A stretch of DNA of 64,000 nucleotides from Bugula neritina. Taxonomy: Eukaryota > Animalia > Bryozoa. Position numbers and translations under genes: made by a program. Every line of letters starts with the position of its first letter. The stretch's first letter is position 1. The notes under the pieces are model-generated. The model was not told the origin of the DNA. It was given only the letters and a program-made list of their open reading frames with translations, and did not search any database. Below are positions 1,461 through 27,331 of this stretch, in pieces. The stretch spans positions 15,986,722 through 16,050,721 of the forward strand of contig OZ037766.1 of NCBI GenBank assembly GCA_964035545.1. Reading direction: 5' to 3'.

Positions 1461-4400
1461 CTATTTATAGCAAGCTCCAGGGGAATCGCCCTCAAGCCTG
1501 GCACAAGAAGCGACACAACTCCCCAATGCTGATGAAGTTGAAGATTGTAACCCCGACTTTTCTGCATCTAAAATATTAAATCAAAACTGTGTTACTATAG
1601 AAAAACTGTAAACTTCACTAAAAATTAGCTATAACTAGGTTTTCCCTGCTATCAGTTAAAGGTTTCTTATGCTGATTTATTTCTCCACTTTTTTGTATAT
1701 GGTATAAACAGTACTGCAAAAATTACTTCCTTCAATTGAATATAAATACATATATAAGCTTCATTGGCTAATTTGCATTTAACAAAAACTTTTTAATTCT
1801 AATTTTATAATGTTGAAAAATTTTCTTGCATTTTATTACACTTTGTAAAGTTACAATGTGTTTTGATTTCAACTACTGCAATAAAATGCCATCATAAAGT
1901 TGAGAGGAATGAAAGCTTGTAAAATTAGCATTCTGAAACTAAATCTTCTTTTTTTATTAAAAATTTCATCTGATTTAGTTTAATATGCTATGAGAAATCT
2001 TTGACTTGACCAGGTAAATAATGAATTGAGATGCTAAATTTAAGATTGGGCAAGTATACTAAAAATTATGATGCACTGTTACTGCTGTATTATTACAATT
2101 AAATAAAAAAGAATCCAATTGAAAATGGCTTTAAACAACAGCAAACTTGTTTTTGCAAATGCACACTATATCTTTTTCATAACAAAAATTCAGCCACCCA
2201 AGCTTAGTGAAAGTTACAAGTCATTGAGTTTTGGTTAATTATTTCAGCATGGAAGTTAATTTTAATTTTCCATGACAATTACCAAACAAATTATTTTAAC
2301 AAAGATAGCTGAAGTTTGGCATAGGCTAAAATGACGACTATAAAAAATTCACACAAGTTTATAGTCGATATCCTTGCTGGAAACCCCTGATAGAAAGGGT
2401 TTTTGTTAGATCGAGCTAAGGACTTATTCAGATAAGGCACAGGAGCAATTATGACTGGATGCTCTTCCTAACATCACCAATGGCCTTTGTCAGGTGTGAA
2501 CCCATGATTTTGTATTCACTAAGCAAACAAACACTCTAACCCCCTAGACCACGGCTGCTCCCTAAATGACGTCTATCGTTTTCAACTTGCTAAGGTTACA
2601 TACCTGCACAATTCAAAGATGTAACAGAGTGGTAGTGATCCATCATCTTGTCATATATCAAAACAATATCTGTTTCTTCACATTCGCCAAAAATTTCTGG
2701 TGCAGCTTTGTTATGCAGCACAGTAATCTTTACTTTGAAAAACTCTGATATTATAGTCAAAACCAAATCTCGGAGTTGTCTATCCCAGCAGTTGTCTGTT
2801 AGTAGACTCTTGATTGTTTGGCTATTAGCTAAGTGGCCATACTTTTCAGGACACAAGTTAGCCGTCTTGTGCACCAATAGTCGTAATGACATACTGTTTA
2901 CACACTTGTCTTGAATTTGTCTAGATATACTTTCAAAAATTGCATTGTTATTCATTGGTACCAAGTCAATTCTGAGTTCCAGCTGCTTCAGCTGTTCCTG
3001 TATGCTCCCATACACTTCTCTTGCGCAAGCTGCAATAGAAAGTGAACATTTCTTACACTTAACTTTTTTTATGATTTTCACAAATAATAATGTATTTACA
3101 AAATTTCCTCAAACCTGTTCAAGAGCAAAATGCATGCAATTCTTGCAGAACACAAGTGTACATTGTTTGATGTTTAGAGTTTGGTTAAATAAAAACTTAT
3201 ATTGCAATTTCCAATTTTAACATGATTGTCCACTATTACAATTAATATAACCTCAAAACTTGAAACTATATTTATAATTCATGCTATTAAGCTCAACGAC
3301 ACCATGATTGCAGTCAAAAAAGCTTAGTTTTATAGTAAATAGTGACACTAAATCTCACCTCCACCAGTTGGTTCCTGATTTTCAGCTGGTTTAGTAACTA
3401 CTGAAGTGGGTTTAACCAACGACTCTGGCTCGGGTGAAGTATTAGATCCTGGCAGCGTGATATTTGATGACCCACCGGCTAGCAATATAGTATTAGATCT
3501 TCCAGGAGGTGCTAGCAGTCCTGTAGCTGAATGATTAGTGGATATGGGAGATGTGTCAATGTATGGTGATATGGTAGGTGTTCTTAGCAAAGGAGTAGCA
3601 TCAGGTGATGGGTGGTGCATAGCTGGTGATGCTAAAGTACAAGCCCTTGGACAAGTTGAAATCGTAGGAAGTTGTTTCTCTTGAGTAATCAAACGGCTGG
3701 CATCGAAGTGATCATGTAAAGGATCGTGGACTAATACTATTGTACTTTCATCAATATCAAGGTTGGTGTTAGGAACATGCAATGGTGGGTTTGCATTTGA
3801 AATTATTACTATTTTTTTCCCTGTAATTTCTGCTAGAATTTTGACAACTAGCTTTTTGACACACTTGTCCCAGACTCCATTTCTCTGCAGTTTACAGAGC
3901 TTTGCAGCTAGTTCTTCAGAGCTTCCAGAGTAACACTCGGCGTATTTGGTAATATTAGTGAGTCCAGTTTCACAAACTCTTTGTCGAAGCTCCTTGTGAG
4001 TTTGCTGGCACTCTCTTGTTTGTCTTGCGACACTCTCAAATAAGCAGTTTCCGTCTGGTAAGACTGGATCAATTACACGGTTTAGTTGATAGAGCTGAGT
4101 AGAAACGGTGTCAAGAGCCTTTTTATCTAAAAGTTTATAATTGACATTTTACAATTAAACCACTAAATTTATACTGTTGAAAATAACTAAATAAATCACT
4201 AAACATGTCTTTTATAACCTAATACCTGTCTAACTAAATTAATTTTAATAGCTACATGCATTGACAATGCTGTCAAAAATACTTATCAAAAGTATTTTAT
4301 AGACAGAGTGAAAAATCTATAGTAAAACCGCTGTTTACACATTTAAACTTTTAAACACCTTACATAGAGTTTTCTTTCAGAGTTTTATTCTGTATTATTT

Positions 4401-5764
4401 TATGATGTATAAAGCTGGAATAAGTTCAAGATTTACATTAAGATCTAGATGATTTGTCATTCATCTGTTGATTCAAACTTGCTGTTTCCGTTCTGGTTAG
4501 TGCTGCACCATGAATTATTCAACATCAGCATTGTAGAAGATAACTCTCATGCACAGGATAATAATAATCGAGACAAGTGAGATATGAAAATGACTACCTT
4601 GTTTCTTTTCTTTTTGTTTATTGCGTTTTCCTGAACAGCAGACAACAGGTTCGTGCAAAAGTTTTTGATAAGGGGGAGAGTCTTTAGAGAGCAGAGTGTT
4701 TGCTTCTACGGAGGTTGGTGAACAGGACTGTTGTACTCTAGATTCTGGTCTTTCTGGGCAAGCCGAAGGTGTTAAGAACCTCTCTTCTAGTTCAGTCATT
4801 AGACCTCCCAACGCTGATACTACAGCAACAAACAAAGCGTATGCTTTAGTCATAATATGTAGCTTTCATGTAAAGTTTTAGCTTAGTTTTAGTTTTTCTA
4901 GCTGTGTCGACGTGTTGCCGTTTGCTTCCCATCAGTGGACTGCATTTTGCAATTAATTATATATATTTATGTGATCAGTAGGATGTATAATTAGTTTTGA
5001 TAAGAATATGGAATAATCACTGCGACTGTCTCAGGTTTTTGCTAATTAGGACTAAGCAATCAAAACTCTCAAAGCATAAAAACTCGAATGAAATTACATG
5101 AATTTAGTCTTGAGACAAGGCTAATTATTACACTTGTAACACTCTAATGGTAACTTGCTGAGCACTAACTTTTGAACGTAATATACTTTGCCTTTATCTT
5201 TGAATTCTCAAAGCTCAACAATTGTTTAGCGTTTATTATTTTCTTAAATAGTTTTCGTACATATGATGTTGTACTTACATAAATCATCTTTTGATTTGTC
5301 TTTTGTTGTAGTATCCAGCTTTTCACAGCTTATTAATTTTGTTTCTATAGAATATAACAACAAATCATGTCATAATTATTCAAAATATAAATTTTGTTAC
5401 ATATAACCCGTAACATATCAGAAGTTCTTTAAATTGAAGAATAAGAAAATTTGAGGCACAAATGTGAAACACTATCAGACTGACAAAGCAGCTTACACTA
5501 AAACAACAACAATCATATAACTTATGAATAGTAATTACTAATTAGCAATAATTAGTTTTGGTTCTATAGTAGGTCCCACTGGAGCAGTAATGTCACCAGA
5601 AAGTGAGCCATTATTCTGAAGTAACTTAGGACATGAGGTTTATTTAGCATGAAGTAAAGATATATTTGACAGAAATCTTTAAAATGGATATTCACTCTGC
5701 TGAAATTTTGAATTTTATAAAGATTGCTTCTCTCACCTGGCTCACACAACCATTTGGTGTCCAT
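1461..5764 (-). CDS. Tandem OTU-like protein, cluster gene 1 (Cys-containing OTU + Pro/Ser/Thr linker + pseudo-OTU)
   Basis: Predicted exons, all joined by phase-1 GT-AG introns: 5764-5737 (MDTKWLCEP, donor CAG|GTGAGA); 4126-3359 (open frame, PVLPDGNCLFESVARQ...W...VHDPLHDHFD, largely missed by the ORF track for lack of a start codon); 3029-2604 (VPMNNNAIFESISRQ...YDKMMDHYH, Cys replaced by Ala); 1567-1461 (ends TAG). The first exon is the least certain. Confidence 0.75.
2352..2563 (-). mobile_element. tRNA-derived SINE copy
   Basis: Minus strand starts GGGAGCAGCCGTGGTCTAGGGGGTTAGAG (A box) with a degenerate B box, then the body AGGAAGAGCATCCAGTCATAATTGCTCCTGTG shared with other copies in the window. 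Confidence 0.85.
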
Positions 5765-6906
5765 TTCTGTAGTTTTGGGACTTACTTCACAGTGAAAGAG
5801 ATGTAAAGTTTTATTTGAAGTGATAGTAAGATTGCCTTGATTTCGTTTTAGCTTCCTAACCAGCAGGTCTTGCAATTCAAAGTCAAAATTGACGATTATA
5901 TAAATGTTTTTTTTATAAATTTTATGAAACTTTTATGTTATGAATTTTTGAAATAGTTCCAAGTTTTTTAGAACAATTGTACATTTTTTGTTGACATAAC
6001 TTTGTATTAGCAGCTACTTTTAGCTAGTTTATAACCACACTAATAAATTTGTTAAACACTCATTCAACTTTTTCTCTTGGCTGATTTCCTCTGCATGAGC
6101 TGAAAGCTACTATATATATGTGTGTGTGTGCGTGTGTGCATGTGCGTGCGTGTAGCCTATGTACGTATGTACATATGTATGTATGTATATATAAATATAT
6201 TATACTGGTTGCTTTGCATCTTCATCAATTTGGAACTAATAAAGAGTATCAGTATACATTTCACTATTGCAATTTTGTATACTATGATTTCACAGACTCC
6301 AGTATAATCAAGCAGTCCCTGCCATTATAATAACTGTAGGTAACGCATTTGTGTTACACAGAACATGTATATTTAAAACAATTCAAATTGTTATTTCTAC
6401 AATAGCATTCTTGATTTGCCGACAGCAATTCAAATAAACATCTGTTAACTGAAAATAGTACGTTGGTTATTATTATTTTAAGCAAACACTGTTTATCTGT
6501 TCAAATAACTTTACAGCTGCATCTTTGAATATAAGCACTTTTGATTAGCAATAAGTGCAATTGTATGAAGTTTTATGATTTTATTATGTTTACATAATAC
6601 ATAGTAGACAGCCCCGACTATTGTAAAAACTTTGCATGCAGAAAATAAAGATATACTGTTACATTGATTGAAATTTAATAAATTTATTTAAAAAATACAG
6701 TGCTTCATGTTATACTAATACTTCATTAAAATAAAGACTATATTTAAAACACAAAAGTTATTATTTTTTCTTTCTAAAACAAAAAAATATCAACTTTGTG
6801 TTTTTTGTGCATGTTAATACTCCATGTAGTATTTTATCTTCAAAAATTTTTCAGCAGTTTTATAATTAATTCTAGTTAAAGATATTTATCACTGTCATAA
6901 TCATCT

Positions 6907-8979
6907 TTAGAGCTTAACTCGCTTCCTAACTTCGACTGTTTCAACATCATCGCTATCATCAGAACCTAGGAGTTGATATAAAAACATTATAACCTGCTAT
7001 TTTGAAGACATAGTAAGTATTATATACACCTAAAAATAGACTAATTCCTACCAAATTTAAAAAAGGCAAAGTAGTCATTTCATTATCACCAGCAATACTT
7101 GTAAGTTTCATTACTTATTGTGATTTAAAGTGGAGCAATGTAAATGCATATATATATCCTAAATTGATAAGAAAAATGTTATGGGCAGGTAAGTAGAGGA
7201 TGTTTTCCTATTTCAAAGTGTCCCAAGTTTATTAATTCTCATTGTTTACCAATTCTAAGTATGAAAACCTTTTGCAAACTTTTTATCCATTTTAGCATAA
7301 GAGACTGAAACTTAGCTACATTCAAGTTTAAAAATGGAAATAATTGGACATTTTTTTCTGTATTTACTTACTTTCTTTCTTTGTGGGTTTTCTGATGGAA
7401 TCATAATGATCTCCCTGCTGGCTATAGACTAGTATAATGTCTCTTGACTTCCGATCATTTGGGTACCACCTGGGATCACCATAAGCTTCAATCACACCAA
7501 TTTTCAAATTTAACCTATCTGCCAGAGCCAAGAGCACAACTGGACGAGCACCTTCTATCCATATCTTGTCTTTTATCAACTTTTGAACATCATCACGTAT
7601 TCTTTCTACTCCACCTTTTCGATAAGGTGCATATTGCTTGGCATACTTTTCAATACAATGGCAAGCTAATTTTCTCAATTCTTGTGGGGTAATGGGCTCT
7701 TTACTTTGACGGGAAATACTGACAAATATAGAATTCCCATCTCTTGGTGTTTTCTCTTTCATCACTCCAATCTGACATAGCTGTCTCTCAATGCTTCCAA
7801 ACAAATGTTGGTCATCTAAAAAGTTTTTATATAATTTGCTCTTTATTTAGCTGTTAAGTCAAAATAAACTAATTACAGTAAGCTGTCTAAATTGGCAAGA
7901 TATGACAAGCTATGTCTCACCTGGTTCTTTAAGACAATGAGATTACCTAATTGAAAAGGCTAGTAATGCTATCAAATCAATAGGAAAGAGAATTCAACTC
8001 TACATTGCTCTTTGTGACAGTTTTAATCTCACTATAAATTCTATTAAGGTAAGTAGCTTAGGGTTGCAAGTTTTCATGAGACAGAAAAATAAAGCAACTC
8101 TTATATATCTATAAAATCTAAGTTAAAATTGGAAGCATTAGTAAATGGGTATTATACAAAAATAAGAAAAGTTATCAACGTGAAATTAGATGAGACGAAT
8201 ATAATGCAAGTTATGGAAAAATAGGTTGTGGCAGTAACCGTAAGCTAAATATTTTATATATGTAAAGTAGCCTTTAGGAATCTTCTTACAGGCATTTCAG
8301 CTTAAAAACTACAAAATATTCAAAGTTTAAGCCACAAACTTATGGTCTTCATATTAAGCAATGTCATAAATACTTTGCAGGCATAAGGTAAGGCAACCTT
8401 AAATTAATTTAGCTATAAATCAAAGTTTATGAGTTTTACCTTCTTCAGATCTGTGTTCTAATGGTTCGAATTCTGTCTGCAATTGGCTTGTACAGATTTC
8501 GTCACCATTATCTTTACAAAGTATGGTACTGAAATAATGATTTTGGGTTGCTGATTGCACTATTACCACCGTATCTTGATATACTTTCCTGTCAGAACTA
8601 TAAAACATTTGAGGCGGAAAGAATGGTGAGATGACAACCATCTTCTTTTGAAGGGCTTCAGATAGTATGGTCATTACCAAGTCTCCTGCTTTAAGTTGCC
8701 AAGTTCCATCCACCATCAAGTTATTTATTTCTTGTTGAAATTTTTTGATTTGTTCATGTTTGGTTGTTTCACCTTCTTCGGCTGACCACATAAACTCAGC
8801 AAACTTATCCGAGTTTGACAGGCCATGATGACATGTAAGTTGGCGAAGAGTTGCATGATCCATGTTAGGTATTTGGTCAGCAACTGCAAGGAACAAGCAG
8901 TTTCCACCTCCCCCTACATCTACTTTCTCCCGATTTATTTCGCTCAGAACTGTATCTACACTTTTCATTTCTTTACTCA
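6907..8979 (-). CDS. Tandem OTU-like protein, cluster gene 2 (Cys-containing OTU + pseudo-OTU + basic C-terminus)
   Basis: Exons 8979-8440 (DVGGGGNCLFLAVADQ...GTW...QNHYFS), 7815-7372 (TPRDGNSIFVSISRQ...GDHYDS, Cys replaced by Ser) and 6965-6907 (SSDDSDDVETVEVRKRVKL-stop); phase-1 GT-AG introns. Start is either the in-exon ATG near 8967 or an unidentified upstream exon. Confidence 0.78.
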
Positions 8980-10321
8980 CTAAAATTATATTTTTTTATC
9001 AACACAGTTAAGTTACGTAAAATTAACTATACATAATATTTTCCTATGTTTGCCTCTAAGTTGAACACTTTAAAATTGTTTCACCATATGCTTATAAAAA
9101 TCATTGTCTGTTTGTCAGGTTTTTAAATAACAAAAACCACTTTGCTTTTAGTAATTTACTATAAAATAAAGGCCATCTATATTTAAATTACACAAGCGCC
9201 TAACATTCTTGCATAATTAAACCCAATGCTCTTTTATAGGCATGTAAATATTTTACTAGACATAAAAATATAACTTGATGTTTGTAGCTCAACAGTTTTT
9301 ATAGCAAATTTAGGCTACTTTATAGTTTCTTATTTGTTCACTTTGCACTATGACTTGTATATGACTTACACACTCAAAATTAAAGCAATAAAGTAAATAT
9401 AACATATTATATAATTATTGTGTTACAATAGTGTCTGGTCTGCTAGCTCTGATACCCACTGAAAGACCATGAATAATATCACTGATAAAGTCCTTGCTAA
9501 CAAAAATTTGGGGCTATAATATGTTTAACAGTATTCAGTATTATGTAAGCAGCTACGACAGAAAAGGCACACTTGTGAAGTTTATTGTTTTGCAACATCT
9601 ACAAATTTGAAACATACCGTCACCTATAATTCTTTCAATAATGGATCTAAGTTATCACAATTCGCAGTGTTATGTTATCGTATAGAAGTTACTCACCAGC
9701 TAGCCAAGTTTTAAGTGATCAGCAACTGATTATCTACATCCTAGGCTAATTATAGCTATCATACTTTATAGCTGCATTGCAATGCATACTATTTATTGTA
9801 AAGCTCTACAGCTTCTATCAGTGCTTGATCATGTACACATAATACAGTAGACCATAACAATACGCAACTACAATAGTTTGTTTATTATTTTACACTGCAA
9901 TACCCTTGGCTTAGAAGTGATAGAAAAGCTCAAACTTTAAACTTGTTAGTGTCAAACTTACAGTGCATCAGTAAAATTCAAGTTATAAATACTCCACTAT
10001 ATTAAACTGTAATATTTGTATGGATAATTGCAAATTTAGTTTAAGTATACCTATTATATTCTATTTATTAAAATCGTAATTTGGATAGAGCAAAACATCG
10101 CAGTCTAGTTTCTAAACTACTCTGATAACTATCACTTATATATATCACTTTAATATAGAAAGTTTTTTTTATCAAACTTGTATCTTTGAAAGATGAACAT
10201 TAGTGTTTTGTGAATAGCTAAATAAATGTTTCAAAGATGAAACTCAAAGCATTGGTTTAGCAGCCATGTCTTTGCAGTAATAGGTTAGTTCATGAGAGCA
10301 ATATAAGTATTTAGTAGCAGC

Positions 10322-10425
<104 letters not shown>

Positions 10426-11961
10426 CAAATATTATAACATAGTATATGCCATCACTGTCTTACATTCATAATATGCAACTTTTCCAGATGCTCCAAACTC
10501 TTCTCCAGAAGCTAAAAAAGTTGAAAAATTGCTCAACGATGTTATAAACAATGGCTAATATGAGATGACATTTAATAAGCAATTACAATAGTGTAACACT
10601 GTCAGACCCATGAAATGGATTGCAAAATTAATAAACACAAACATCTTTATAGATATTTATAAAAGTTAAGACAAGCTAAGTTTTGGCAAAGTTTAAATAG
10701 TGAGTCAAAAATTGAAGTATCAAGATTTACCATGTTGTGTATTAGAGTAGTGTATTAGAGTATACTGTGAAACAGTAGTGTAGTGGAGTAATGTATTAGA
10801 GTCTTATAATGCAGTTTATTGCTTAATGCAGGTTATGGTTATCACCTCTAATTTATAAACAGTACTTATAATAATATATTGATTACCAGGCATTTTTGAA
10901 GACATGATGAAAACCTGGAGCTCCGTTAACTTCAAGTGCTCAGTTTATTCATTAAAGCACATTTATAGAATACCCAGCCAGCTGGTTTGTTTCTAAGAGA
11001 AAAATAATTTTTCATCATTATTGATTACTAATTTTTCACATGAATAATAAGTATACATTGAGCATCACATAACTATTTATGCTAATAATAAATTTTACTC
11101 ATACAACTTATACCACTATAACTATAAGTTAAGCAATATAATATTTGTAGGAATTACCCAAATTTATAGTCTTTTAAGGCGAATGGAGAACTAAACTGAA
11201 GCCATTTGGTTAGATTATTTTTATTTTGTAAGAAGGAAAAAGCTACATAATCAAAACACCAGAATAAATTCTTGCAATGCCACAAATTTTAGCCTCCTAA
11301 AATAATATTATGTATTTGTTGCTAAATTATTTACTGAGAAGTTATCAAATGCACAGTGCACTTTGTCTTGCTGTATCTATAACATCAATATGTTTAATTT
11401 TTTGCAAGAAACTCAATGTTGATTTATGTGCATACAATTTCCAATCTGACAATCAGCATCAAAATATAAGCTTATGCTAGTTCATTAAATACATTTTACT
11501 TTGCAAATAAATTTTCTGCACATTTGACATGTTGTATATAATGTATAAGCCTGTGTGTGCGTATATACACATGCATATATAAGATAAACACAAACAAATT
11601 CAGCCGTTATATTATAAGATATTTATCTGTTAGCGATGATTATAATTTTAAATCAATAATAACATTATGTTATATAAATTCTAATGATATTCTAGAAGAG
11701 AGAACCTGTGGTCCGGTAGCTACAGGTACTAGTTTAGATCAGCATAGTCATTTGTAATATCAAAAAACTATTCAGGTATAATTGCTAGCATAAATTCTTT
11801 AAGCCATGCTTTCAGCATAGTCTGGGGCAGTGCCAAAAAGCCCTTGCCACCAAAGTTTTTAAATGGTCCACAGCTGCAAGCAACCATGAAGCTTACGTCA
11901 GTGATACAAAATAACCGATGCTGTATGATAAAATATAGTATATTATAATCACATCCATTCA

Positions 11962-12500: not shown

Positions 12501-12882
12501 ATAATGATATCCAGTGTTTCACATTGATGGAAGATGCTCTAAACATGAACATATAATATGATGGTACTGTGCAGGGTAATGATAGACAGGTGAGAATGAT
12601 ATCCATTGCTCCATAAAATAGAAATGTATTTGACTGCCTGAAATTAAAGTGAAAATACAATTTGAAACATTTGTGCCAAAATGTTTAAGAAAAAGCCCTT
12701 CTTTTTTCCCCAAGCTAAATACTGCCAAATGATATAACTATATCCATACTGTTAATATACTTCACAAGTGTAGAAATGCATATTGTGATCTTCATGAATT
12801 ATACAAAACTAGCAATAAAAAATGTGTTTGAAAATTGTTGGAAAATGCTGAAATAATATTTTTTTGTATTATCAGCTAGAAC

Positions 12883-15800
12883 ATGATGGTGAAAGGTGAG
12901 AAAGTAACATAATCATTTGAACTTCACTTTTAATTCTGGTGCAATACTCAGCTATTTAGAATATATCAAAAGACTATTTTATTTGACATATTTTTGAAAG
13001 AATTTAACACATTTTTATGTGGCAGTAATTAAAGCTATGTAAAGCAAAAGTAAAGAGTTTTGTGCTTGAATTGTCTCAGGTTAAAGCAGTTATAATATAA
13101 AGCTAACTTATTAAAATAGGCTATATCAATGCTGCTTTTAAAACTTTTTGATTTAATAGTAAAACAGTTTCACCAAGTTTGCCGTTAGCCACAAAGTTCA
13201 ATTTTCAACAAATCTTTTACTATTTTTAGTCATAATCAAATAGAAAGGCAAGAAATATTTTAGTAAGTATGATATATTTAATTACTGATCACTTTTGCTC
13301 TAAGCTGAAATAATTTTCATGCGTTATTGTTGTTCAATAGTTTGTTGGGTTAAACAAGCTTTTTGTGTGAAACTGTTACATTCCATGCTAAGATTAAATA
13401 TGGTGAATGTCTATTTATATAATTGAGAGGAAAGCAATGCAAGTGTCAAATTAGAAACCAAATTGCCTAAATAGAATAAAACTTTGTTAAAAAAACATTA
13501 AAGTTGTTTTTGCTTTACATTAAAGCAACATGCCTATAAAACCACTTATGAAAAATTTTGGATTTATTGAACCTTTTTATGCTCATACATGCAGTTGATG
13601 CTTTAACTGTTCCTTTTTCCGTTAGCTTTCTGTGAAAATTTTGTTGAAAAATGTTACATGTTACATGTCTCTATAGAAAATGTCTTTGTGGAACTACTTG
13701 TTGTTTGTTTGTTTTGTTGTGAGCAATAGCATTGAACCTTTACGTTGACAAGCCTACTTAAAGGAACAACTTTTATTCTGTTGCACTTTAGCTGAACTTA
13801 GTTTTTCACAATCCATGCATGTAATCATGTTTCTAATTTATAATGAATATAGAAGTTTAATATAACAGGAAAATATGGGTTATCATACTACAAATAACAC
13901 AGCAGCAATGTTACAGTAATTTGTATAAAACATGTTTTTTAGTTAAAACGCGGAAAGTTTAGAAACGCTACTGAAGATACTAGTTTGTGAATTTCTTAAG
14001 GACATTCAACTATGGACGGTAATACTTATTGTATTTATTTGATTCCAAAGTAACTTGCTGGAGAACAGTCGCCAGAAAATTTCTGCAGAACACACTTTTT
14101 AATGCATACTTACAATAATTTATAAATAGTTTTCCATTAATTCAAATAACTGTGCGTGCGTGTGTAACATTTCAATAACTTACTAAATATAAGCGTTAAA
14201 TCCTTTGAATTTTATTGGAGTTGAAATGAATGTTCTATGCATTCCTAGCTGTAACAATTGGCAACTATTTTATTTTAACAGCATTAATTTTAGTTTACCT
14301 ATCACTTTTAATTTGCTAAAAGTGCATGCAGGTCAAAATATAATTTAATCTGTGCAAATCATTGCAGTTCTTAATGCTCTAACCATTTTTATAGAGCCAC
14401 ATTGTAGTTGTTTGCTGTGTTTGAATCTAGATGATATTTGCTAGTTACTTGGTCACAAATATTAGTTTTGGCATTTAATGACCAGATTTGCTAAAAACAT
14501 TTATTTTTGCTATTGTTTATAATTAACCCTTCAAAAGTATCAAAATAATTTTGCATGTACATCAAATCTAATTCAAATTTTTCTATTACAAGTTACAGAA
14601 AAATATGATCTTTTATTCAGCTGTAGCTCAGATATACAAGTACTTTGCTTCTCATTTAACTTAGTGGCTTCCAAGTTTAATTTTTCTATTTAATAGAGAG
14701 ATATAATAATTTGCGAAAATGCAGTTTTTTTTTTTAATATATGTTATCTAGATGCTCATGAAAATTGCATTTAGTTACTGAATAGAACCAATATTTGTAT
14801 TTATTACTTGTTGCACTTCCATATTTAAGGGAAATCATGCTACAAAACCAATGAAGAACATTTGAAAGATTTCTCCAGAAAGCTTGTGCCCATTGCACCG
14901 AATGGAGACTGCCTTTTCGAGTCTATAGCCAGGCAGATTCAGGGAGAGTCACTTTTAGAGGCAGATGAATTGAGAGAATCTGCTGTCACATACGGAATCG
15001 CACACTCAGACAATTTCTCAGAGTTCTATTGGCAAGATGACAGCACTGTTGATCTCAGCTCACCAGGCAAAAGGAAACAAGCATTTGAAAAGAACTTGGA
15101 ACAATATTTGTGCCCAGGAGTGTGGAACAGTGAAATAGGAGATTTCATGAGTTCGTTGGTTGCTCTGGCTGCCAATCTGAAAATAGTAATTCTCAAAGAC
15201 AATTCTTTACCTATTTTTGTTCCACATGAGTTTGAAGTGACTGATGAGTCAATTGTCATAGTGCACAGTTCCAATGGCACTCATTATGATGCAACAAGAC
15301 CAATGACAAAAGAGGAGAAAGCTGCTCAACAGCGTCCTTCATCAGGTATGAACCGTCATAGCACAAGTACCTGTAGTAGTAATGTGCAACCTTTGTATAA
15401 CAATATGTTATTAGTAAAAGCAAGTTAATTTATGTAGCAGGTAAGAATGTAGTGAAAAGAGACCTTTTATTCAGCTGTAGCTCAGATATACAAGTACTTT
15501 GCTTCTCATTTAACTTAGTGTGCAGTAATATTTCCACATACAGTAAGCCAATAGCTATAAGTTAAGCAAGTTGAAATAATATTTTAATATCAAAGTAATA
15601 AAACAACAAAAATGAAAGATATTGTGTTTTTAGTTTGTAGCAGAACACCAACAAAAAGATCATCAGAATCTACTTCGCTACCTACTGCTCAAATCTGTTC
15701 CAAACTGTTTAAAACTAAAGCTGACTCATCAATCATTTCTAAAGAAGTATCTTGGAGTTCCAATTATCCTTCACCAAACGACTCGCCAACTTCATTTTCA

Positions 15801-16829
15801 CTAGATCTTCCTCCACCAAATTCTCCTTCATCAGAACTTCTTCCACCAAATTCTTCTTTACCAGATCCTCTTCGACCAGATCCTTTTTCACCAGATTCTC
15901 CTTCACCAGATTCTTTTCCACCATATTCCCCTTCACCAGATCTTTTTTCACCAGATTCTCTTTCTTCAGATTCACACTCACTAGCTGACTGTGCAGAAAA
16001 TAAATTGACAACAAAACCATTACACTCTGTCCTTCAAACTTCCCCAGAGAATTTAGAATGCTTGAAACCCAAAACTGACTCACTGCTTCTTGATGTAAAT
16101 CCTAAAAGCTCAGAAGCTGTGCATTTAACTACCAATTTAGAAAACTCAGAACAAGATGGAGGAATAAACCTTTCAGGTTCGACCTCACCAGCTACAATTC
16201 ACAATTTAGATATGTTTGTTAGAAAAAAAGAATCATCAGCTGCTATTGATGATTTAGATGTGTTTGTTGAAGAAAAAGAATCACCAGCTACCATTCATAA
16301 TCCAGATATGTTTGTTAAAAAAAAAGAATCACTAACTACTATTCATGATCTAGATATGTTTATAAAAGACGAAGAATCGCCAACTCCAATTTCTTCAGAT
16401 GTATTTTGGAGTCCAATATCTCTTCCAAGAGAAAAATTGACAGAAAACGTGTCAAACAAACCAGAAAGTATTTCAGCAATAGATTTGTTTGATTCAAGTC
16501 TTAAATTATCTGACTCTTCTACAAATCAACTCTTGATAAATTCCCCAATGTTTACTGCATTTAGCCCAGGGAACCAATCATCAAAAGGCTCCTCTTATTC
16601 ATCAAGCTCAGCTACATCTACCGATCCCATAGCAGCAAGTGATTGTGTCGAACCTTCAGGGCATTGTCCGAGCACAAAGGAAACAAGGGCGGAGTCACCA
16701 AGTAGCCTGGCTTACTCCCAACAATCAGTTTTATTGTATCCTGTAGAAAGCACTGAGTTACCCGATGTGCTATGGGAACCAAGTCCTAGTAGATCAAGCT
16801 CATCCAGTCCAACTCATGAAAACAAATAA
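12883..16829 (+). CDS. OTU-like protein with long Ser/Pro-rich repetitive tail, cluster gene 3
   Basis: Exon 14830-15345 (PIAPNGDCLFESIARQ...GVW...GTHYDA) splices in phase 1 to 15634-16829 (low-complexity tail, TAA). Candidate in-frame 5' micro-exons: 12883-12895 (MMVK) and 14001-14018 (HSTMD; alternative start ATG at 14012). Confidence 0.75.
14610..14666 (+). repeat. 57-bp direct repeat, copy 1 (5' of the OTU exon)
   Basis: CTTTTATTCAGCTGTAGCTCAGATATACAAGTACTTTGCTTCTCATTTAACTTAGTG, identical to 15464-15520. Confidence 0.92.
15464..15520 (+). repeat. 57-bp direct repeat, copy 2 (3' of the OTU exon)
   Basis: Identical to 14610-14666. Confidence 0.92.
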
Positions 16830-19208: not shown

Positions 19209-19470
19209 CTAGCAGAGAACCGTGATCTAGTGATTAGCAATGAACAAGTCTGCACCAGCTAATGGGTTTGAATCCCAGAGGGGTCATTGATGATGTCAGG
19301 GCGAGCATCCAGTCAGGGTTGCTACTGTAGGATTATTGCACAATTTTTGCTGTTAGGAGTTCTTGCAAGAGTGGATCCTTTAAACAAAGGTGATTGAGTG
19401 ATAGAAGTGTGAATGCTACCATCATACATGTAGTTTTCTCACAGGGGTGGTAACTATAAACTTGTGTGAG
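19209..19470 (+). mobile_element. tRNA-derived SINE copy (diverged)
   Basis: GTGATCTAGTGATTAG...GGGTTTGAATCCC...GATGTCAGGGCGAGCATCCAGTCA...TTCTCACAGGGGTGGTAACTATAAACTTGTG. Confidence 0.65.
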
Positions 19471-21145
19471 TTTTTTTTATGTAGCATACACCAGTTTATT
19501 TATATATAGCTAAGAATTAAGTAGTTAACAATGCAGTGAGCAAAAGCAGTTTAGGTGTAATAGAGCAATATACCTTACATCTCTTGTAAGAATAGAATAT
19601 AATTTTAAAATATAAAAGAAAAATGTTCTCCTAATATGATAAAAGCGCAAGGCTGAAGTATTCTTTTATAATGTCACTTAATGATAACTTGCATGAGAAT
19701 GACGCTAGTCACCAAATTTTTTATATATGAAGGCTTTTTAACAGTAATGATTCAGCAACTGCTAAACGGTAAGTAGATGGAAATAGTAAACAATGAAGAA
19801 TTTTTTTCAATGATTTTATTCTAAAGCTTATACTATTTATATTACCTGATGGCATATTTGTAATAATAATTGTAGCTTCACCACTAAACAATATAGGAAT
19901 GTACTAAAGTGTGTGTAGCAAATGCTATTAACTATGTTCTTAGATTCTCCCCATCTCTCAAACAGACCACTTCTTCAACCAACTACCACCTAGAAGCTCT
20001 TTGCTATTACTGTCTTGCAGTCTAAGCTACAGACATAAACAGTAGAAACACATTAACTACAAGGGTGTCTTGGCGATTTATGAACTGTGCACATTATCAT
20101 GACTCATGCTTTCACACACTATAGTACATCAATAACCTAACTTGAAATTTTTTGTGATTTCTACACAGGCTAAAATTACTGAACAATGAGTAAATGTTAT
20201 ATTATAGTTCCCATACTCATGTAAACATTTATACTAAAACTAAATAGACAAGTTGAAAGAGTGAGCTGTAGTTAAAATTAATAATTTTTGGTTATTAATG
20301 TTGATTAACTACTCAGTGAAGATTTCAGAGAAAACTTTCCAATAAGCTGTGGAGTTTTAAAAGACTCATTTCTGTTGTTTTGTGGAGAAATTTTACGACT
20401 AGCATTGTTCAACAGCAGGCCAAACTTAAACTGATTGCAATAAAACTACAAAGCCTTTGAAAACCCAGCACTATAAGAATAGAAAAAAATTTATCAAGAC
20501 TATATTATTGCGTGTATGGCATTATAAAAATATCTAAACTATGAATATAATGGTGCACTTATGCAAGCAATTTAAAGAATTCCACAGTGATGCAACACAG
20601 ATTAACTTTTTAATCGCCAACAAAAGGTAGGTATATTGAGACTTTGTTCTTATTAACTTATAGCTAGTTTTTAGAAATACCAAATTTACTTTTAAAAGTT
20701 AAATAGAAAACACCATTCAACGTTGGTCTACCCATCTCGACTATAACATTATGCTTGAGAAAATATTTTCCAATGCATTGCTGTTGATGGCTTTTTTCAA
20801 ACTTAACTTAGTAAAGTTCTATCACTGCGTTTCAGCTATAGATGGTTATTGCTAGTTACTACAAGTTATTGCCAGATATTTTAGGCTTGAACAACGTAGT
20901 TGACTTTATAAATAAATTATAACACTTTGGTTTCAGAAAAGCATATTTTTATAATGCAACAGTAAACTAGAATGTTTAGGTTGCTATTTAAATATTCAAC
21001 TATGTTATTACTTGTGCATGTGTGGTAATACGTATATTCCATTTGCATAGTAATATATATTTACATTGTAATATCTTTGTATTTTAAGGCTCAGCTGGCC
21101 TGGCCCAATTGTAAAGAAATCTCTATAATTAACACAGTCAGCAAG

Positions 21146-24100
21146 ATGGATTTCCGCTCAGGTACACTCTTAGCATCAGAATTCTACTGAGCTAGGCAAT
21201 ATCTAAGAACTATGCTTGATGAGTATAACATTCTACAAATATGAACAAATAGTCTTTGCTTAGTAAACAAAGGGCTATAGTAAAAATCTAGATTAAAAGT
21301 ACTCACCCAAAATCATTTTCTAGAAGGTTAATACATGCAAGCTATCAAAATGTCACCGAATCTCATAATTTTATAACATTCTAAATATATTTATAAAAAG
21401 CATGGTCACTAAAGGAGATTTAACTTGGAAGAGGTTTTCATTGCTATTATTATAAAATTTAATCTACACTATATTATAAAGTGATCAATTGCAATTCTTA
21501 CCGAAAAGCAACTAAGCCAAGATTTATTTACAATAAAGATATCACATATAAAGTTTCGTAAAAATGAATGATTCAAATAATCAACATGAAAAAGTGTTAT
21601 ACTTAGAGTATTATACTATAAGTTAACAAAGTCAATCTTGGTTGGGATTATTGTATTTATTTGAAACTGCGACCTAAGGCGTAACAGGGCATTAATCATC
21701 TTTTACCGAACTTTTATTGCACCTAGCTATTGCGCCATAAATAAGTCCACCAAAGTCTTCAACGTCTTCCTGCGTACTAAACTTAAAAAAATATCTCCTA
21801 AACTTATGTAGTAATGTGATTTAGTTTTAAAATGTTATTTAGTTTTGTTATTTCTAAATCTTATTTTTCATAAAAAATAGCTTGTTTATATATTAGTATA
21901 TTATTTTACAAAATAATTTTGATAAAGCGTAAGATATTACTGCCATACTGTAAATTATTAGAATCTGTACTAAATTGCAGAAGTTGCATTTAATTTGCAC
22001 ATTAATTGTTCTATCAGTTGGAAAAACACTAAAATTGTATGCTGTTAGATTTTAGTTTTGCGGCTATATGCATTTACAATAACTCATACATATATCAGCA
22101 GAGATTTTGAGTTTGAGCTGCAAAATTTTTAGCTGAAATACTCTGAGCTTCAAGACAAAAAAAAAGCAACTTTTGAAAGCTCTTGTTGTCTTTCCAATGT
22201 ACAGTATTTTATTGAAAACTCAGCAATAAAGAAGTATTAAATATCACTCAAATATGCTTTCAAGATTTATTCTAAGCAAGACATTTATTATAATGTTATA
22301 ATATATAGTCTGTAACTATTCTGTAAAAAGTATTTCTTCCAAATACTCCCCATTACTTTTATACAGCAAAATACCAATGCAAAACCCTACCAAGACATTT
22401 GGAAGACTTGCAGAGAGCAGTGGTATCTATTCCTGGAGATGGAAATTGTCTGTTTCAGTCTATTGCGGAGCAGATTCATCAAGAGCCCCGCTACACGGCT
22501 CAGCAACTCAGAACCCTAGCAGTTAATTATGGCATAGCAAATTCAGCTACTTATGCAGATTACTTTTGGCAAGACTCTTGTGGTGAAGATGTCAGTACAC
22601 CTAGAAGAAGAAGAATAATATTTGAAAATAACCTTTCGTCATTTCTCGATGCAGGAGTATGGGATGGTATAGTTGGAGATCTCATGACCACATTGGTTGC
22701 TTTGGCTGCTAATCTAGAGATAGTAGTTCTCAAAAATAATATGCCTCCTATATTTCTTCCACACGAGTTTGAAGTGACTGATAATTCAATTGTCATAGTG
22801 CACATTAGTGATGGCACTCACTATAATGCAACAAGACCAATGACAGATGAGGAGAAATATTATTCATCTTGTCCAACAGGTATGCATGCCATCTTATGTA
22901 CATCTGCAAAAGCATATCCAGTAAATATTCTAGTTTAGCAAATAGCACTAAAAGGGTTTATTGAGCAATTAAACAGATGCATTAACAACATCCTTTAGCA
23001 AACAGCTAAGATATGACTGGTCAATAGTTATTGCGTGCAATACTATAGACTGAGAGTTTTTCAAAATTATTTTAATTTGTAAGATGCATTTTGTAAATTT
23101 TAGAATATGGGTCTGTGCGAAAACAAGCAGAGAACCTTAATAGAATTATTGTTGATCAACCAGTGAGAGATGGGGACAGTTTTTTTATTAGCGTTGGTGA
23201 ACAAGTTAGAAGATCTCCAGTATATGTGCGAAAAAGTGTTATTGATTACTGGAAAGAATTTGGAAATGAATTGTATAATTGCTATCCAGAGGATTTTCTA
23301 AAATTCTTTGAGCTACAAAATGAAGTTCCTGAGAAAGGATTTTGGCACAAAGACATAGAAAGGATGTGTCTCCTAATTATACAGAGAGCTTATAGGTTAA
23401 AACATATACTACTGTTGAGGCGAAACCAGCCACCACTTGCCGCTCCCGAACGTTCCAATCCATTACCGTACGTTGATGAGGAAACTGTGGTACTTGTAAA
23501 AGGAAGAGATGACTGCTATGCTTCGACAATGTATAAAGGTAAGGAGAGCTACAATGAGAATATTCCCATCAGCGATAGCTATAGCAATTATAAATTTACC
23601 TTTTTAAGGCTTGCGTTCAATGTTTACTAAAATGTATACGCTTAAATTTAAGGTGAAGTTTACAATCATCCAACGACAATTGCAAAGCTTGGTGAATTGG
23701 GCATTACCACCACAACACCATGTTCTACTGCTGCTGCAATCAGTTCCCCAACCTTGACAAGTAGCAAACATATCGCAGGTATGTAAAGCCATGGCATAGC
23801 TATAATAGTAGTAGTATAAGATATATAATAGTATAACATATAAATTATGCAATAAATAGCATACTACTTAAAAACTCACTAACACAAATTTATAGTTGCT
23901 ATCCCTGTGAGAAAACCCCTGATAGAAGGGGTTTTTGTTGAATCTGGGCTAATTGGATTTATTTAGATGAGGCACAGGAGCAATTATGACTGGATGCTCT
24001 TTCTAACATCACCAATGGCTTTTGTCAGGGCTCGAACCCACGACTTCGTGTTTACTAGGCAAATGCTCTTATCCTTAGACTACGGCTGCTCCCTATTATA

Positions 24101-27100
24101 TATTATTCAAATTAATTGAGAAATATGTAAATGTGTTCAATTTGAATTAAAGTGCATTTTTTAAAAATAATGTTGTGCATGGATAAATTTTCAAAACTTT
24201 AAAGACAATTTTATTGTTGTGATAAAAGCTATAGCCAATAAGTAATTCTCATTCACAAAAATGTACTTCTTATGCTGTTAGCTTCAGTTTGCTATTTAAA
24301 ATACAAGAACAAGTTTTAGTAAGAAGAAAAACTCATTTCTATAGAAGTAAATATTAAAACATTATTATTACTTATAGAAAGTTTTTAATGTTTCGGTCAA
24401 TTCCATAGAAATGGGTTTTTATTTGCTTTTGCTTAACCCATCATGACCTACTGAATGTAAAACTATTTTCATACAGTGTTTGCAGACATTATATTTTGGT
24501 AAGCCTAGGGCCATACGGTGCGTATTTTCGCATGCAAAAATTGAAACCACAAGTAGCAAAGGTGTCCACTGTAGCGTCAGTGATGCGTGATAAATAAAGC
24601 TTTCATTTTTAAATCGCACTCGCTTACAATAAAACGCAATTTACTGGAATGTAGCACTAAAATAAAAAAATTGGGCTCGCTAAATAACTACCGGCCAATT
24701 AGGTGACGACGACAGAGACGATTCGCACTTGCGTTGAGAATGCTGAGCGACAAGTGCGAACGTTTTCTCAACGCCTACAGCAGACACCTTTGCTACTTGC
24801 GATTTCAATTTTCGCATGCGAAAATACGCACAGTGTGGCCCTAGGCTAACACAAACTACTGTGTGTGTGTGTGCCTTAATTGCAGTCCATTGCAAAAATG
24901 AGGAACTTTTCTTACATAATTGTAAGAGAGGCATTATTAATACAGAGTGAGCAATTGACTGGTAGTAGTTGAAAACGTATGAGGCCTTCTTTCACCCTAT
25001 AAAGAACATATATGTGACAGCATAAATCAAATGATCTGAGGATGTCATGAAAAGTGTATAGCGTTTTTATTAGCAACTATGTTCACATCTGAAAAGATTT
25101 CCTTGGTACATATGTAAATGCTGAAACAGGGCATATAAACAAATATACCACAGTAATATAAACGAATATGCTTGTCAGGAGTTCGATAGTCACTAGCATT
25201 GCTCTGTGAGTATTTTTAAGAGTTAGAAAATCATAACCTTAACTCTCTAGCGTTTAGAGAGTCGGCATACTGAATTACATAAAAAATAACTCCTGAAGTA
25301 AACTATTTAATAAATGTGGTAAGAGGCTGCCTTTAAGAAATTACAAGCTGCTTATAAACCCGATAGTAGTGTAGGCAACTCCAGTGTTCTTCAGCAGATG
25401 CAAATACTACAAATGGGAAACCTTACTTTGTATTGCTATGTCAGGAGCATAAGTCAACAAATAGTATACAAAAGACAGGAATTGGAAATTTTAAATTTAT
25501 GATATAATTGCTTGAAAACACGTATTTCCTAATAATTTCTATCGAATAACATATTCAAATATAAGAGTGTAAAATATAGTTAGAGATAGTAATATTAAGC
25601 ATGGGCTATTGAATATCTAAAGCTTAACAAATGTTTGATCTACAGAGCTTAAAATAAGCAACTGCCTAATTTCATTCGTTTTTGCAGTAAACCTTTAAAC
25701 TGAGAAAAACATTTTAGGCTTATATTATCTAATATAACTTGCTGTTCTGTAAATTTTTATTCATTTATACTGTTTTATTAATTATTGATTTATTTTTTAT
25801 TGACTTAATAATCTGAACTGTATAATTGTTTTGACCAATACTTCCTGTGGTGTAGCCAAACAAAAAGCCCCTAAAAGAAAGTTGGAGTATCAACCTCAGA
25901 TAGGAGAGCCGCAGTTAAAACGCCCAAAGCCAAAGATTTTTTCGTGTATGTTTTACAACTTATGATACTTTTCTTAATTGTATTCTTTGCATTTATAGAA
26001 AAATTTGTTTAAACTTTATTATTTTGTTGCAAGCATTTAATGAGTTTTATGGTTAAAAGTGCTTTCTTAAAATGTGACTGTAGTAGATTTATCAAGTAAC
26101 TTTGAAATAGAGTCTACAGCTAACCTGTTGTTAAATCATCATGGTGATATGTTGCACTATTGATTACACAGACATTTCATTATATAAACTCAAGAAAATT
26201 TATAGCCGCTATCCCTGTGAGAAACCCCTGATAGTAAGAGTTTTTGTTAAAGTAGGCTAAGGACTTACTTAAATGAGGCACAGGAGCAATTATGATTGGA
26301 TGCTCTTCCTAACATCACCGATAGCCTTTGTCTGGGCTTGAACCCATGACCATCTTGTTTACTAGGCAAACGCTTTAACCCCTAGACCACAGCTGCTCTT
26401 TTGACATTTTACTATATACATGAATTAAATAACTTCATCATGTACATTTATATAATATATATCATTATTTTAAATATGTGTTAAAAATCTTAGCTACAGT
26501 ATTGATTTTGCATATAGTATAATAATTAAAACGATATATCTTTGTGAGTGAATGTAACAGTTGAATTTTCTTGTTCTGGTATACAGGTGAAGAAATCGAT
26601 GAAAGCCAACCTTCACTCTATCCAACAGTACCCATCACTGAGCCACTCTTCGTACAAGGTCATTTTAAAATTACATTGCTAAAGTAAATTCATAAGTGGT
26701 TTAGCTTTGAAATATTATAGTTCTGTTAGTTAACTATCAACCTAGTAAATCATTCATTGCACCAAAACGTTTTGCAGCATTTGCATTTTAACTTAAGTTC
26801 ATAGAGTTGCATCAACAATTGAAAGATATACTGTGTTCGCTACAAGTTTAACAGTAAAATTTTTTCTGGCATATAGTGCATGGACGAGAGATAGACTATC
26901 CAAAAATTTCTCCAATTACTTCGCCTATGGTAGCAACAACATCTCCTTATGGGCAATGGGGCTCACAGCAGCAAGAGTCTACACCGATGGAGTTAGACCA
27001 CTCTCCAGCTCTAGATATATCTTTGTACCAGTCATCTGAGAAAGAGGTGAAATCAAAGCCATGTAGGCAAACTGCATCAGATAGATCTCGGTCATTAAGT

Positions 27101-27331
27101 CCCCGTAAGTCCCCAAACTCCCATTCTTGCAGACAGAGAGCATTAAGTTCGAAAAGGACATCACCCCCAACCTCTTGTGGTCAGAAGCAAGCACATGAAA
27201 GATCCCGGACACCGAGTCCTTATAAACCTGTGATGATACCATCACGTAGGTCTAGAGGCTCAGCATCTTCAGATGAGTCTCCAAAGCCATTTAAAACCCC
27301 AACTACTCCAGCTCGCACTCCAAGACAATAA
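21146..27331 (+). CDS. Tandem OTU-like protein, cluster gene 4 (Cys-containing OTU + pseudo-OTU + NLS-like exon + Ser/Arg/Pro tail)
   Basis: Exons 21146-21161 (MDFRS), 22367-22879 (SIPGDGNCLFQSIAEQ...GTHYNA), 23104-23538 (VRDGDSFFISVGEQ...DDCYAS, Cys and His both lost), 25856-25945 (KRKL...KRPKPK), 26587-26658 and 26877-27331 (TAA). All five introns are GT-AG phase 1 and the frame is continuous. Confidence 0.8.
23883..24094 (-). mobile_element. tRNA-derived SINE copy
   Basis: Minus strand: GGGAGCAGCCGTAGTCTAAGG...GCCTAGTAAACACGAAGTCGTGGGTTCGAGCCC (tRNA-Thr(AGT)-like arm and B box), then the shared body and 3' stem-loop. Confidence 0.88.
24503..24846. mobile_element. MITE with ~70-bp TIRs and TAA TSD (PIF/Harbinger-like)
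   Basis: GCCTAGGGCCATACGGTGCGTATTTTCGCATGC... versus ...GCATGCGAAAATACGCACAGTGTGGCCCTAGGC; TAA at 24500-24502 and 24847-24849. Confidence 0.8.
26193..26400 (-). mobile_element. tRNA-derived SINE copy
   Basis: Same family as 23883-24094 along its full length. Confidence 0.85.

Follow-up and report, generated by a model that had tools for sequence, protein, structure and literature searches.

We analysed a 64,000-nt stretch of the genome of the bryozoan Bugula neritina (assembly GCA_964035545.1, contig OZ037766.1, positions 15,986,722 to 16,050,721), called the window in the following and numbered from its first letter, which carries a cluster of four genes for OTU-like proteases (genes 1 and 2 on the minus strand, genes 3 and 4 on the plus strand). 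Genes 1 and 2 each encode one polypeptide in which an N-terminal OTU domain that keeps the catalytic Cys and His is followed by a second OTU domain from a Cys-less lineage; gene 4 probably encodes such a live-plus-dead polypeptide as well. The two domains of genes 1 and 2 are joined by splicing, the Cys-less domains share the OTU fold, most of them are under purifying selection, and the same architecture occurs in another organism. Binding of ubiquitin by the Cys-less domain and its cooperation with domain 1 are inferred, as would be any role in the cell. Our preferred reading, to which we give about even chances, is that of tandemly duplicated, lineage-restricted deubiquitinase (DUB) genes of the OTUD type with an in-built non-catalytic OTU module that binds the ubiquitin tail. 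A role in defence or germline control, as suggested by a first-pass annotation made from the sequence, is not supported.

Six-frame translation recovered seven OTU-like domains in the window, with the positions and motifs that the first-pass annotation had given. Here, g1d1 denotes domain 1 of gene 1, and so on, while g0 denotes an eighth domain outside the window. The minus strand holds the open frames 3351-4148 (g1d1, DGNCLF / DHF), 2599-3108 (g1d2, NNNAIF / DHY), 8423-8995 (g2d1, GGNCLF / NHY) and 7367-7846 (g2d2, DGNSIF / DHY); those of the plus strand are 14829-15425 (g3d1, NGDCLF / THY), 22327-22935 (g4d1, DGNCLF / THY) and 23097-23627 (g4d2, DGDSFF / DCY). Pairwise identity among the seven is 24-32%, and their alignment has invariant Phe, Gln, Arg, Trp and Pro positions. 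Catalytic Cys and His are both present in g1d1, g2d1, g3d1 and g4d1, i.e., the first domains of genes 1, 2 and 4 keep them, as had been claimed. The remaining domains carry Ala/His (g1d2), Ser/His (g2d2), Ser/Cys (g4d2) and Ser/Glu (g0) at the two sites. That is, g1d2, g2d2, g4d2 and g0 are instances of the DUB fold without its nucleophile.

Homology searches and fold predictions were run exon by exon. All four Cys-bearing domains pass the cut-off of the Pfam OTU family (PF02338), with 37.7 (g1d1), 30.2 (g2d1), 30.7 (g3d1) and 31.7 bits (g4d1). Among the Cys-less domains, g2d2 stays marginally below it (22.8 vs 23.3 bits), and the scan gave no Pfam match at all for g1d2 and g4d2. We also built a profile from the four Cys-bearing domains alone and ran it against about 1,400 open reading frames (ORFs). 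The Cys-less domains, which had no part in this profile, were found with E-values of 6e-29 (g0), 9e-17 (g1d2), 6e-16 (g2d2) and 5e-9 (g4d2), compared to 0.03 for the top unrelated ORF, such that their homology to the Cys-bearing domains is far beyond chance.

Searching the window with the family profile yielded no domain beyond the seven, leaving gene 3 with one. The profile search of the whole 216-Mb assembly added a single copy, g0, right beside the window (the next-best genome match has E 8e-4). A count of seven is therefore correct within the window and one short for the locus. Domain g0 lies on the minus strand at L001:6813-7256 (G000:C2:15985534-15985977), some 0.75-1.2 kb ahead of position 1 of the window. 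It has neither the Cys nor the His (NSNSFF...NEY), forms an unbroken 157-codon frame and has predicted phase-1 splice sites at both ends; no Cys-bearing partner domain is found between g0 and gene 1.

Transcript evidence comes from a metagenomic RNA-Seq run of 2016 (X1). Its contigs, assembled from this single run and representing a slightly different strain or sibling taxon, are about 95% identical to the exons. They were aligned over positions 2950-8949, i.e., genes 1 and 2, with DNA run X2 as control, in which none of the X1 splice joints occurs. The joints have CT..AC ends, i.e., they correspond to GT..AG introns on the minus strand. For gene 1, the joints 5279>4819, 4598>4126 and 3359>3029 are present, the last of which links the exons of domains 1 and 2 in frame (phase 1 on both sides). 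For gene 2, joint 7372>6965 connects domain 2 with a short tail exon, and a contig stops at 7817 with a loose end that matches the last stretch of the domain 1 exon; this places the junction at 8440>7815. All introns of both genes are in phase 1, such that domains 1 and 2 are read in a single frame. The proposed pairing of intact and pseudo domains within single spliced transcripts is thus confirmed for genes 1 and 2.

The exons of gene 1 (minus strand) are as follows. A partial upstream exon at 5279..5341, where the X1 contig ends in sequencing adaptor at 5341, contains no in-frame ATG and is probably 5' untranslated region. The N-terminal coding exon 4598..4819 is delimited by the joints 5279>4819 and 4598>4126, both in phase 1; it holds the first in-frame ATG (4799-4797), a candidate start whose codon is Val in the contig L008 of a sibling taxon. 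The domain 1 exon (3359..4126) has X1 joints at both ends and comprises the Cys-bearing OTU core (DGNCLF...DHFD, about 3675-4100) that accounts for the 37.7 Pfam bits, as well as a Ser/Pro/Thr-rich linker of 105 residues (3359-3674). Finally, the domain 2 exon (2596..3029, stop codon 2596-2598) encodes the Cys-less OTU NNNAIF...DHYH, in which Cys is replaced by Ala. The summed exon lengths give about 467 codons from the first ATG.

Gene 2, on the same strand, starts with the domain 1 exon 8440..8968 (GGNCLF...NHYF, likely ATG 8968-8966), where an X1 contig spans 8448-8949 and continues past it. Its donor GAAG/GTAAAA at 8440 is in phase 1. This Cys-bearing domain is without the usual Asp before the Cys and without an acidic residue after the His. 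The domain 2 exon (7372..7815, phase 1 on both sides) encodes a Cys-less OTU (DGNSIF...DHYD) that retains His and Asp of the triad beside the Cys-to-Ser exchange. An 18-residue acidic/basic tail forms the last coding exon (6907..6965, stop 6907-6909), for which the X1 joint has GT..AG ends and the contig continues to 6879. In sum, the exons amount to 343 codons.

The models of gene 3, gene 4 and g0 are splice-site predictions, as transcripts were looked at for genes 1 and 2. Gene 4 (plus strand) has a predicted Cys-bearing domain 1 exon at 22367..22879 (DGNCLF...THYN, phase-1 acceptor and donor) and a predicted domain 2 exon at 23104..23538, which encodes an OTU domain without Cys and without His (DGDSFF...DCYA). 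Both its predicted donor (22879) and its predicted acceptor (23104) are in phase 1 and conserved in the sibling contig L002, the acceptor (TTTTAG/AATATG) despite an indel of about 100 nt in the intron. The splice sites annotated as intact are hence backed by transcripts in genes 1 and 2, and by prediction plus conservation of both sites in gene 4. For an ORF at 26876-27331, which had been read as the last part of gene 4, no link to this gene was found. Gene 3 (plus strand) is represented by a lone Cys-bearing OTU exon (NGDCLF...THYD) with predicted boundaries 14830..15345, a phase-1 acceptor and a CAG/GTATG donor resembling that of gene 4. A metagenome locus scan with g3d1 gave no orthologue of gene 3, and a comparison of genes 3 and 4 for tail exons found none in common. 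Just 3' of the gene 3 exon, a 413-codon Ser/Pro-rich open frame (15588-16826, plus strand) contains internal repeats of D-M/V-F-V-x-K/E-K-E-S and is too long for chance in AT-rich DNA; the obvious acceptors fail to join it in frame to the predicted phase-1 donor of gene 3.

All OTU exons are phase 1-1 modules, supported by X1 in genes 1 and 2 and predicted for g0 and genes 3 and 4. Given these flanks, an OTU exon can duplicate, chain or drop out without breaking the frame, and the single-exon design would let arrays grow or shrink by exon duplication and loss. What lies between the domains varies, with an inter-domain linker of about 105 residues in gene 1 and about 25 in genes 2 and 4.

We compared the locus to contigs L002, L006, L008 and L009, which come from 'symbiont metagenome' samples of a type that has been made from B. 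neritina (PMC5041132; species inferred). They are genomic DNA of a related taxon, colinear with the locus and 82-92% identical including introns. The ratios of nonsynonymous to synonymous substitution rates (dN/dS) are pairwise Nei-Gojobori estimates from small counts, with p-values against dN = dS. For gene 1, we obtain 0.15 for the N-terminal exon (p 8e-4, vs L008), 0.22 for the core of g1d1 (p 9e-4), 0.08 for the linker (p 7e-7) and 0.04 for g1d2 (p 6e-11). The values for gene 2 are 0.54 (g2d1, p 0.07) and 0.25 (g2d2, p 0.02), those for gene 4 are 0.23 (g4d1, p 2e-4) and about 2.0 (g4d2, p 0.22), and g0 shows 0.20 (p 0.005). That is, three of the four Cys-less domains (g1d2, g0 and g2d2) are under purifying selection, as is expected of a pseudo-deubiquitinase, and g4d2 is unconstrained. 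In genes 1 and 2, the Cys-less domain is even more tightly constrained than its Cys-bearing partner; g2d2, e.g., has 95.5% amino-acid identity to the sibling taxon. The rate of g4d2 is neutral or above, which is compatible with relaxed as well as with positive selection. Its frame is open and its splice sites are intact in both taxa, with an identical N-terminal motif, and it forms the longest branch of the family tree. The view that the dead domain is kept by selection thus holds for g1d2, g2d2 and g0 and is not borne out for g4d2. Likewise, the family had been described as fast-diverging, which fits the paralogues, g4d2 and in part g2d1, while the other domains show ratios of 0.04-0.25 between the sibling taxa.

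The linker of gene 1 has a low-complexity look, yet it is 97% identical over 103 codons. Since its constraint is among the strongest at the locus, a specific binding or modification role is suggested.

These data bear on the idea that the Cys-less domains are decaying, functionless duplicates carried along in transcripts, which we consider very unlikely for the family. It is g4d2 that speaks for decay, with its ratio of about 2, the missing Pfam match, the loss of both Cys and His and its long branch. Against decay stand the significant purifying selection on g1d2, g0 and g2d2, frames that are open in two taxa with conserved splice sites, the confident folds of g1d2 and g4d2, and the age of the Cys-less clade with its foreign relatives (see below). 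For g1d2, g2d2 and g0, decay is refuted; it is credible for g4d2 only.

To place the family, we ran an exhaustive profile search, which found 3,864 proteins at E ≤1e-3 and 199 at E ≤1e-10. About 50 representatives outscore the first OTUD3-like protein. Six of them are orthologues of local domains (70-99% identity); the others are 23-44% identical and, apart from two proteins of Watersipora, single-exon fragments from Logan or ENA assemblies. Beside the Watersipora proteins, about 40 clusters from AT-rich contigs belong to the family, with many relatives lacking the Cys; the contigs that we fetched have 31-38% GC. Looking up 30 clusters gave names only for the two Watersipora proteins and for an OTUD3-like protein of Dictyostelium, which belongs to the outgroup. 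Word-indexed protein searches returned nothing for the g1d1 exon and only the query itself for the Watersipora protein P0035, i.e., no further annotated relatives.

The two named relatives, both annotated as 'uncharacterized protein', come from another cheilostome bryozoan, Watersipora subatra. XP_067936303 (P0035) is a family member with two Cys-less domains, and XP_067949937 (P0036) has one Cys-bearing and two Cys-less domains. They are only about 23-27% identical to the cluster and sit on long branches. In another organism, contig L026 has a same-strand tandem of three family exons, first a Cys-bearing one (DGNCLF...HYD), then a Cys-less one (NGNSLF...HFD) and last a degenerate one, while L023 holds two Cys-less exons in tandem. 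All exon boundaries of both contigs are in phase 1, so conservation of the architecture and of the exon design extends beyond the Bugula neritina genome. Contigs L017-L021 are too short to reveal a partner domain. With the Watersipora proteins, the roughly 40 clusters and L026, the family is not confined to one genome.

A candidate for a full-length animal protein with active and Cys-less domains (P0077) was dropped, as it sits among bacterial genes. A 965-residue bacterial protein in which a Cys-less OTU (DANSLF) comes after a Cys-bearing one is encoded at L022:3027-5924 (plus strand; Logan SRR21361474), next to genes for seryl-tRNA synthetase, FtsK, LolA and YkuD; it may represent a live-plus-dead arrangement that arose separately in bacteria.

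We computed a 44-row tree with OTUD3-like proteins as the root (support given as bootstrap/SH-aLRT, the latter from the Shimodaira-Hasegawa-like approximate likelihood ratio test). When asking whether the pseudo-domains form one clade, we find 16 of the 17 Cys-less domains, among them all four local ones, in a single clade with moderate support (90/81). The label Cys/no-Cys changes twice on this tree, compared to about 14 times when shuffled. Within the clade, g4d2 groups with P0026 (99/86) and g0 attaches to that group (97/91), while g1d2 and g2d2 are sisters (92/84) adjoining P0019 and P0033, i.e., each local Cys-less domain pairs with a foreign relative. Among the Cys-bearing domains, g3d1 and g4d1 are sisters (100/100). 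A g0-like relative shows the same unusual His-to-Glu exchange, and domains of the g0 type and of the g4d2 type both occur on contigs from one sample, so that the two types split before that organism diverged. The tree therefore favours, without proving it, that the Cys-less type arose once and long ago. This is at odds with the first-pass view that the Cys was lost in a different way each time, with the restriction that approximately unbiased (AU) tests do not formally reject separate origins.

Next to the family itself, the profile matches solved structures of OTUD3 (E 1e-13) and OTUD5 (3e-10), followed by Otu2/OTUD1; viral OTUs match at E 1e-3 or worse. AlphaFold models of single domains were built on a 60-row family alignment and reached a predicted local distance difference test score (pLDDT) of 91.9 and a predicted template modelling score (pTM) of 0.86 for g1d2, and 88.7 and 0.83 for g4d2. 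The top match of both is OTUD3 (PDB 4bou), with TM scores of 0.77/0.78 (E 5e-8) for g1d2 and 0.69/0.74 (E 1e-6) for g4d2; over OTUD3, OTUD1, Otu2 and OTUD5, the two models score 0.65-0.78. Among the structure matches listed, the top ones are OTU domains, and the sole other subfamily is Otubain 1 (rank 45 for g4d2). A language-model search for look-alikes of g1d2 returned OTU clusters as well. The annotated OTU fold is thus upheld by both the profile and the models.

Orthologues of these known families are present elsewhere in the genome. A separate multi-exon OTUD3 gene is located at L016, G000:C3:24955148-24957312 (4bou with E 4e-12 over one 79-residue exon), a multi-exon OTUD5 orthologue at L013 (E 3e-21), and a third multi-exon gene is OTUD6-like, judged by eye only. 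Given the OTUD3 and OTUD5 genes elsewhere, the cluster is a subfamily distinct from both. The tree agrees, as a 100/100 branch splits the cluster family from the OTUD3-like outgroup, and no UBA or other Pfam family was found in the cluster ORFs at E up to 1, i.e., the OTU-then-UBA layout of OTUD3 is not present. We thus rejected the candidate assignment of the cluster as OTUD3 orthologue; one-to-one orthology to a known OTUD gene, which would have spoken against the first-pass annotation, was not found.

An unrelated 254-codon OTU ORF occurs in identical copies on different chromosomes (L011:839-1600, plus strand, and L012:839-1600, minus strand) along with a broken third copy (L010:848-1240, plus strand), located on G000 C3 and C4. 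Each copy is preceded by a TG-rich microsatellite coding for Cys/Met/Tyr/Val. It looks like a transposon-borne OTU protease that is unrelated to the cluster family.

Such a multi-copy ORF in the same genome, together with OTUD3 being the closest solved structure, could be held to indicate that the cluster is itself a transposon- or virus-derived OTU, or simply the animal's OTUD3 orthologue. We deem this highly improbable. The whole-assembly profile search places the family at one locus only, its members are old paralogues with 24-32% identity, and conserved phase-1 introns, spliced mRNA and colinear orthologues in the sibling taxon are at variance with a mobile element, as are the poor viral matches with a viral source and the separate OTUD3 and OTUD5 genes with orthology. 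The transposon-borne identity was rejected on the same grounds, i.e., one locus, divergent paralogues and spliced mRNA, vs the identical copies L011/L012.

What the Cys-less domains retain was surveyed in 42 Cys-less and 128 Cys-bearing domains of the family. The Cys site of the former is occupied by Ser (30), Ala (6), Gly (2), His (2), Asn (1) or Asp (1), and none of the 42 shows a bulky residue reachable from a Cys codon in one step (Arg, Trp, Tyr, Phe). Where the position aligns, an aromatic 'gatekeeper' is kept in 31/31 Cys-less and 106/106 Cys-bearing domains; it is Tyr or Phe in all eight local ones. Of the Cys-less domains, 38/42 retain the Phe at the second position past the Cys site and 32/39 the Trp of the variable loop, while the His is kept in 18 and lost in 13 of 31. 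In OTU enzymes, the gatekeeper contacts Gly75 of ubiquitin and selects for Gly-Gly tails (PMC7391069). Furthermore, replacing Cys by Ala in OTUD1, OTULIN or Cezanne raises the affinity for ubiquitin or chains, while Cys-to-Arg abolishes binding (PMC6172466).

According to our preferred reading, the Cys-less OTU would hold the C-terminal tail of ubiquitin or of a ubiquitin-like protein without catalysis and would act as a natural substrate trap. It may thereby supply an extra ubiquitin-binding site to the adjoining active OTU, and this added site might set the substrate or chain/linkage preference of the latter, as the UBA may do in OTUD3.

The same residues can be read in terms of catalysis, i.e., the Ser-bearing 'dead' domains could still be hydrolases that use Ser-His(-Asp) or have relaxed requirements, e.g., for ester-linked ubiquitin. 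In g2d2, the triad consists of Ser, His and Asp, the Cys-less domains at large have Ser in 30/42 and His in 18/31 cases, Ser substitutions may keep some hydrolase activity (PMC6172466), and the Cys-less OTULINL is a weak Ub-Ser esterase (bioRxiv 10.64898/2026.10.20.760496). The most constrained domain g1d2, on the other hand, has Ala and hence no nucleophile, g4d2 and g0 are without His, and the His loss in 13/31 clade members argues against catalysis as the shared function of the Cys-less clade. We therefore regard this explanation as unlikely, and slightly more so its extension to the Ser-for-Cys clade as natural Ser-nucleophile or relaxed-requirement ubiquitin hydrolases, e.g., esterases for Ser/Thr or non-protein hydroxyls. 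If it were true, one protein could erase canonical as well as non-canonical ubiquitination via its fused isopeptidase OTU.

Alternatively, the Cys-less domain could serve the active OTU as a pseudoenzyme partner, activating or positioning it by domain contact without binding ubiquitin itself. Pairs of active and inactive MPN domains in JAMM deubiquitinase complexes provide an analogue. This would agree with the strong constraint in gene 1 (0.04 for g1d2, 0.08 for the linker) and with the fixed order at the locus and on L026, where the Cys-bearing domain precedes the Cys-less one. A pure scaffold, however, needs neither the gatekeeper (31/31) nor the small residue at the Cys site (38/42) that are kept; g0 seems to stand without an active partner, and the linker length varies widely between gene 1 (about 105 residues) and genes 2 and 4 (about 25). 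Overall, we rate the contact-based explanation as rather doubtful.

Several points weigh against the ubiquitin-tail-binding module that we favour. Domain g4d2, with its dN/dS of about 2 (p 0.22 vs 1) and very long branch, may be losing its function or be under different pressure. The supposed active partner g2d1 lacks two auxiliary catalytic-site residues and shows weak constraint (0.54), and g0 and gene 3 depart from the pair pattern. The dN/dS values are pairwise with small counts and derive from metagenome contigs with inferred species. Within-gene sister pairs are not rejected by the AU tests (p 0.17 and 0.11), with the respective trees being 15 and 21 log-likelihood units worse. Moreover, it is residue patterns that suggest ubiquitin binding by the Cys-less domain, and the folds were modelled as single domains, such that domain-domain contact is outside their view.

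Beside the OTU genes, the window is eukaryotic in character, with about 30-37% GC apart from one retrotransposon. The latter is a Ty3/Gypsy-type long terminal repeat (LTR) element at 30320-35715 (minus strand), a 55-58% GC island in the ~32% GC window, with an unbroken 1,524-codon ORF for protease, reverse transcriptase, RNase H and integrase and, upstream of it, an ORF of 289 codons; two identical short ORFs (28614-28688 and 35819-35893), spaced by about 7.2 kb, probably mark its LTRs. Copies of a dispersed ~180-bp repeat that could be SINE- or MITE-like (short interspersed nuclear or miniature inverted-repeat transposable element) are found at 2351-2507, 26196-26378 and 37969-38149 and also at L002:3839-4018; they are 80-89% identical, and one lies directly downstream of the gene 1 stop codon.

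In phrase searches of the literature, we found neither a tandem OTU that pairs an active with a Cys-less domain nor the cluster subfamily described. Pseudo-deubiquitinases are few, and the textbook case among OTUs is the single stand-alone OTULINL. In contrast, the locus gives a whole clade of natural Cys-less OTUs that are under selection, keep the ubiquitin-tail channel and are placed in cis to an active OTU. If these domains do bind ubiquitin, they would form a new class of ubiquitin-binding module and provide a clean system for studying how an extra site tunes linkage or substrate choice. All that is said here on function is what we infer, and the family has so far been seen only in bryozoans and marine contigs.

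Beside the Watersipora proteins, four known systems come close to the cluster proteins. Human OTUD3 (4bou) is the closest solved structure by profile and fold for both Cys-less models, and the Cys-bearing cluster domains share its DGNCLF Cys loop and HY His loop. Identity is only about 16-30%, though; the cluster proteins have a second, Cys-less OTU and no UBA, and each of their OTU domains is a single exon, whereas the OTUD3 gene of this genome is multi-exon. OTULINL/FAM105A is, like the second domains, a Cys-less OTU pseudo-deubiquitinase that has been retained in evolution (bioRxiv 10.64898/2026.10.20.760496). It is a stand-alone protein of the OTULIN branch with Asp at the Cys site, while the Cys-less domains of the cluster are of OTUD type, have Ser or Ala at this site and follow an active OTU in the same polypeptide. 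Legionella LotA also combines two OTU domains in one polypeptide. Here, both domains are active and differ in linkage preference, and LotA is a bacterial effector unrelated in origin to the cluster. Finally, the Cys-to-Ala substrate-trap mutants (OTUD1 C320A, OTULIN, Cezanne) have the same exchange as g1d2 (PMC6172466). They are engineered, while the state of g1d2 is natural, old and under selection, such that g1d2, with its putative binding, would be the natural counterpart of the hand-made trap.

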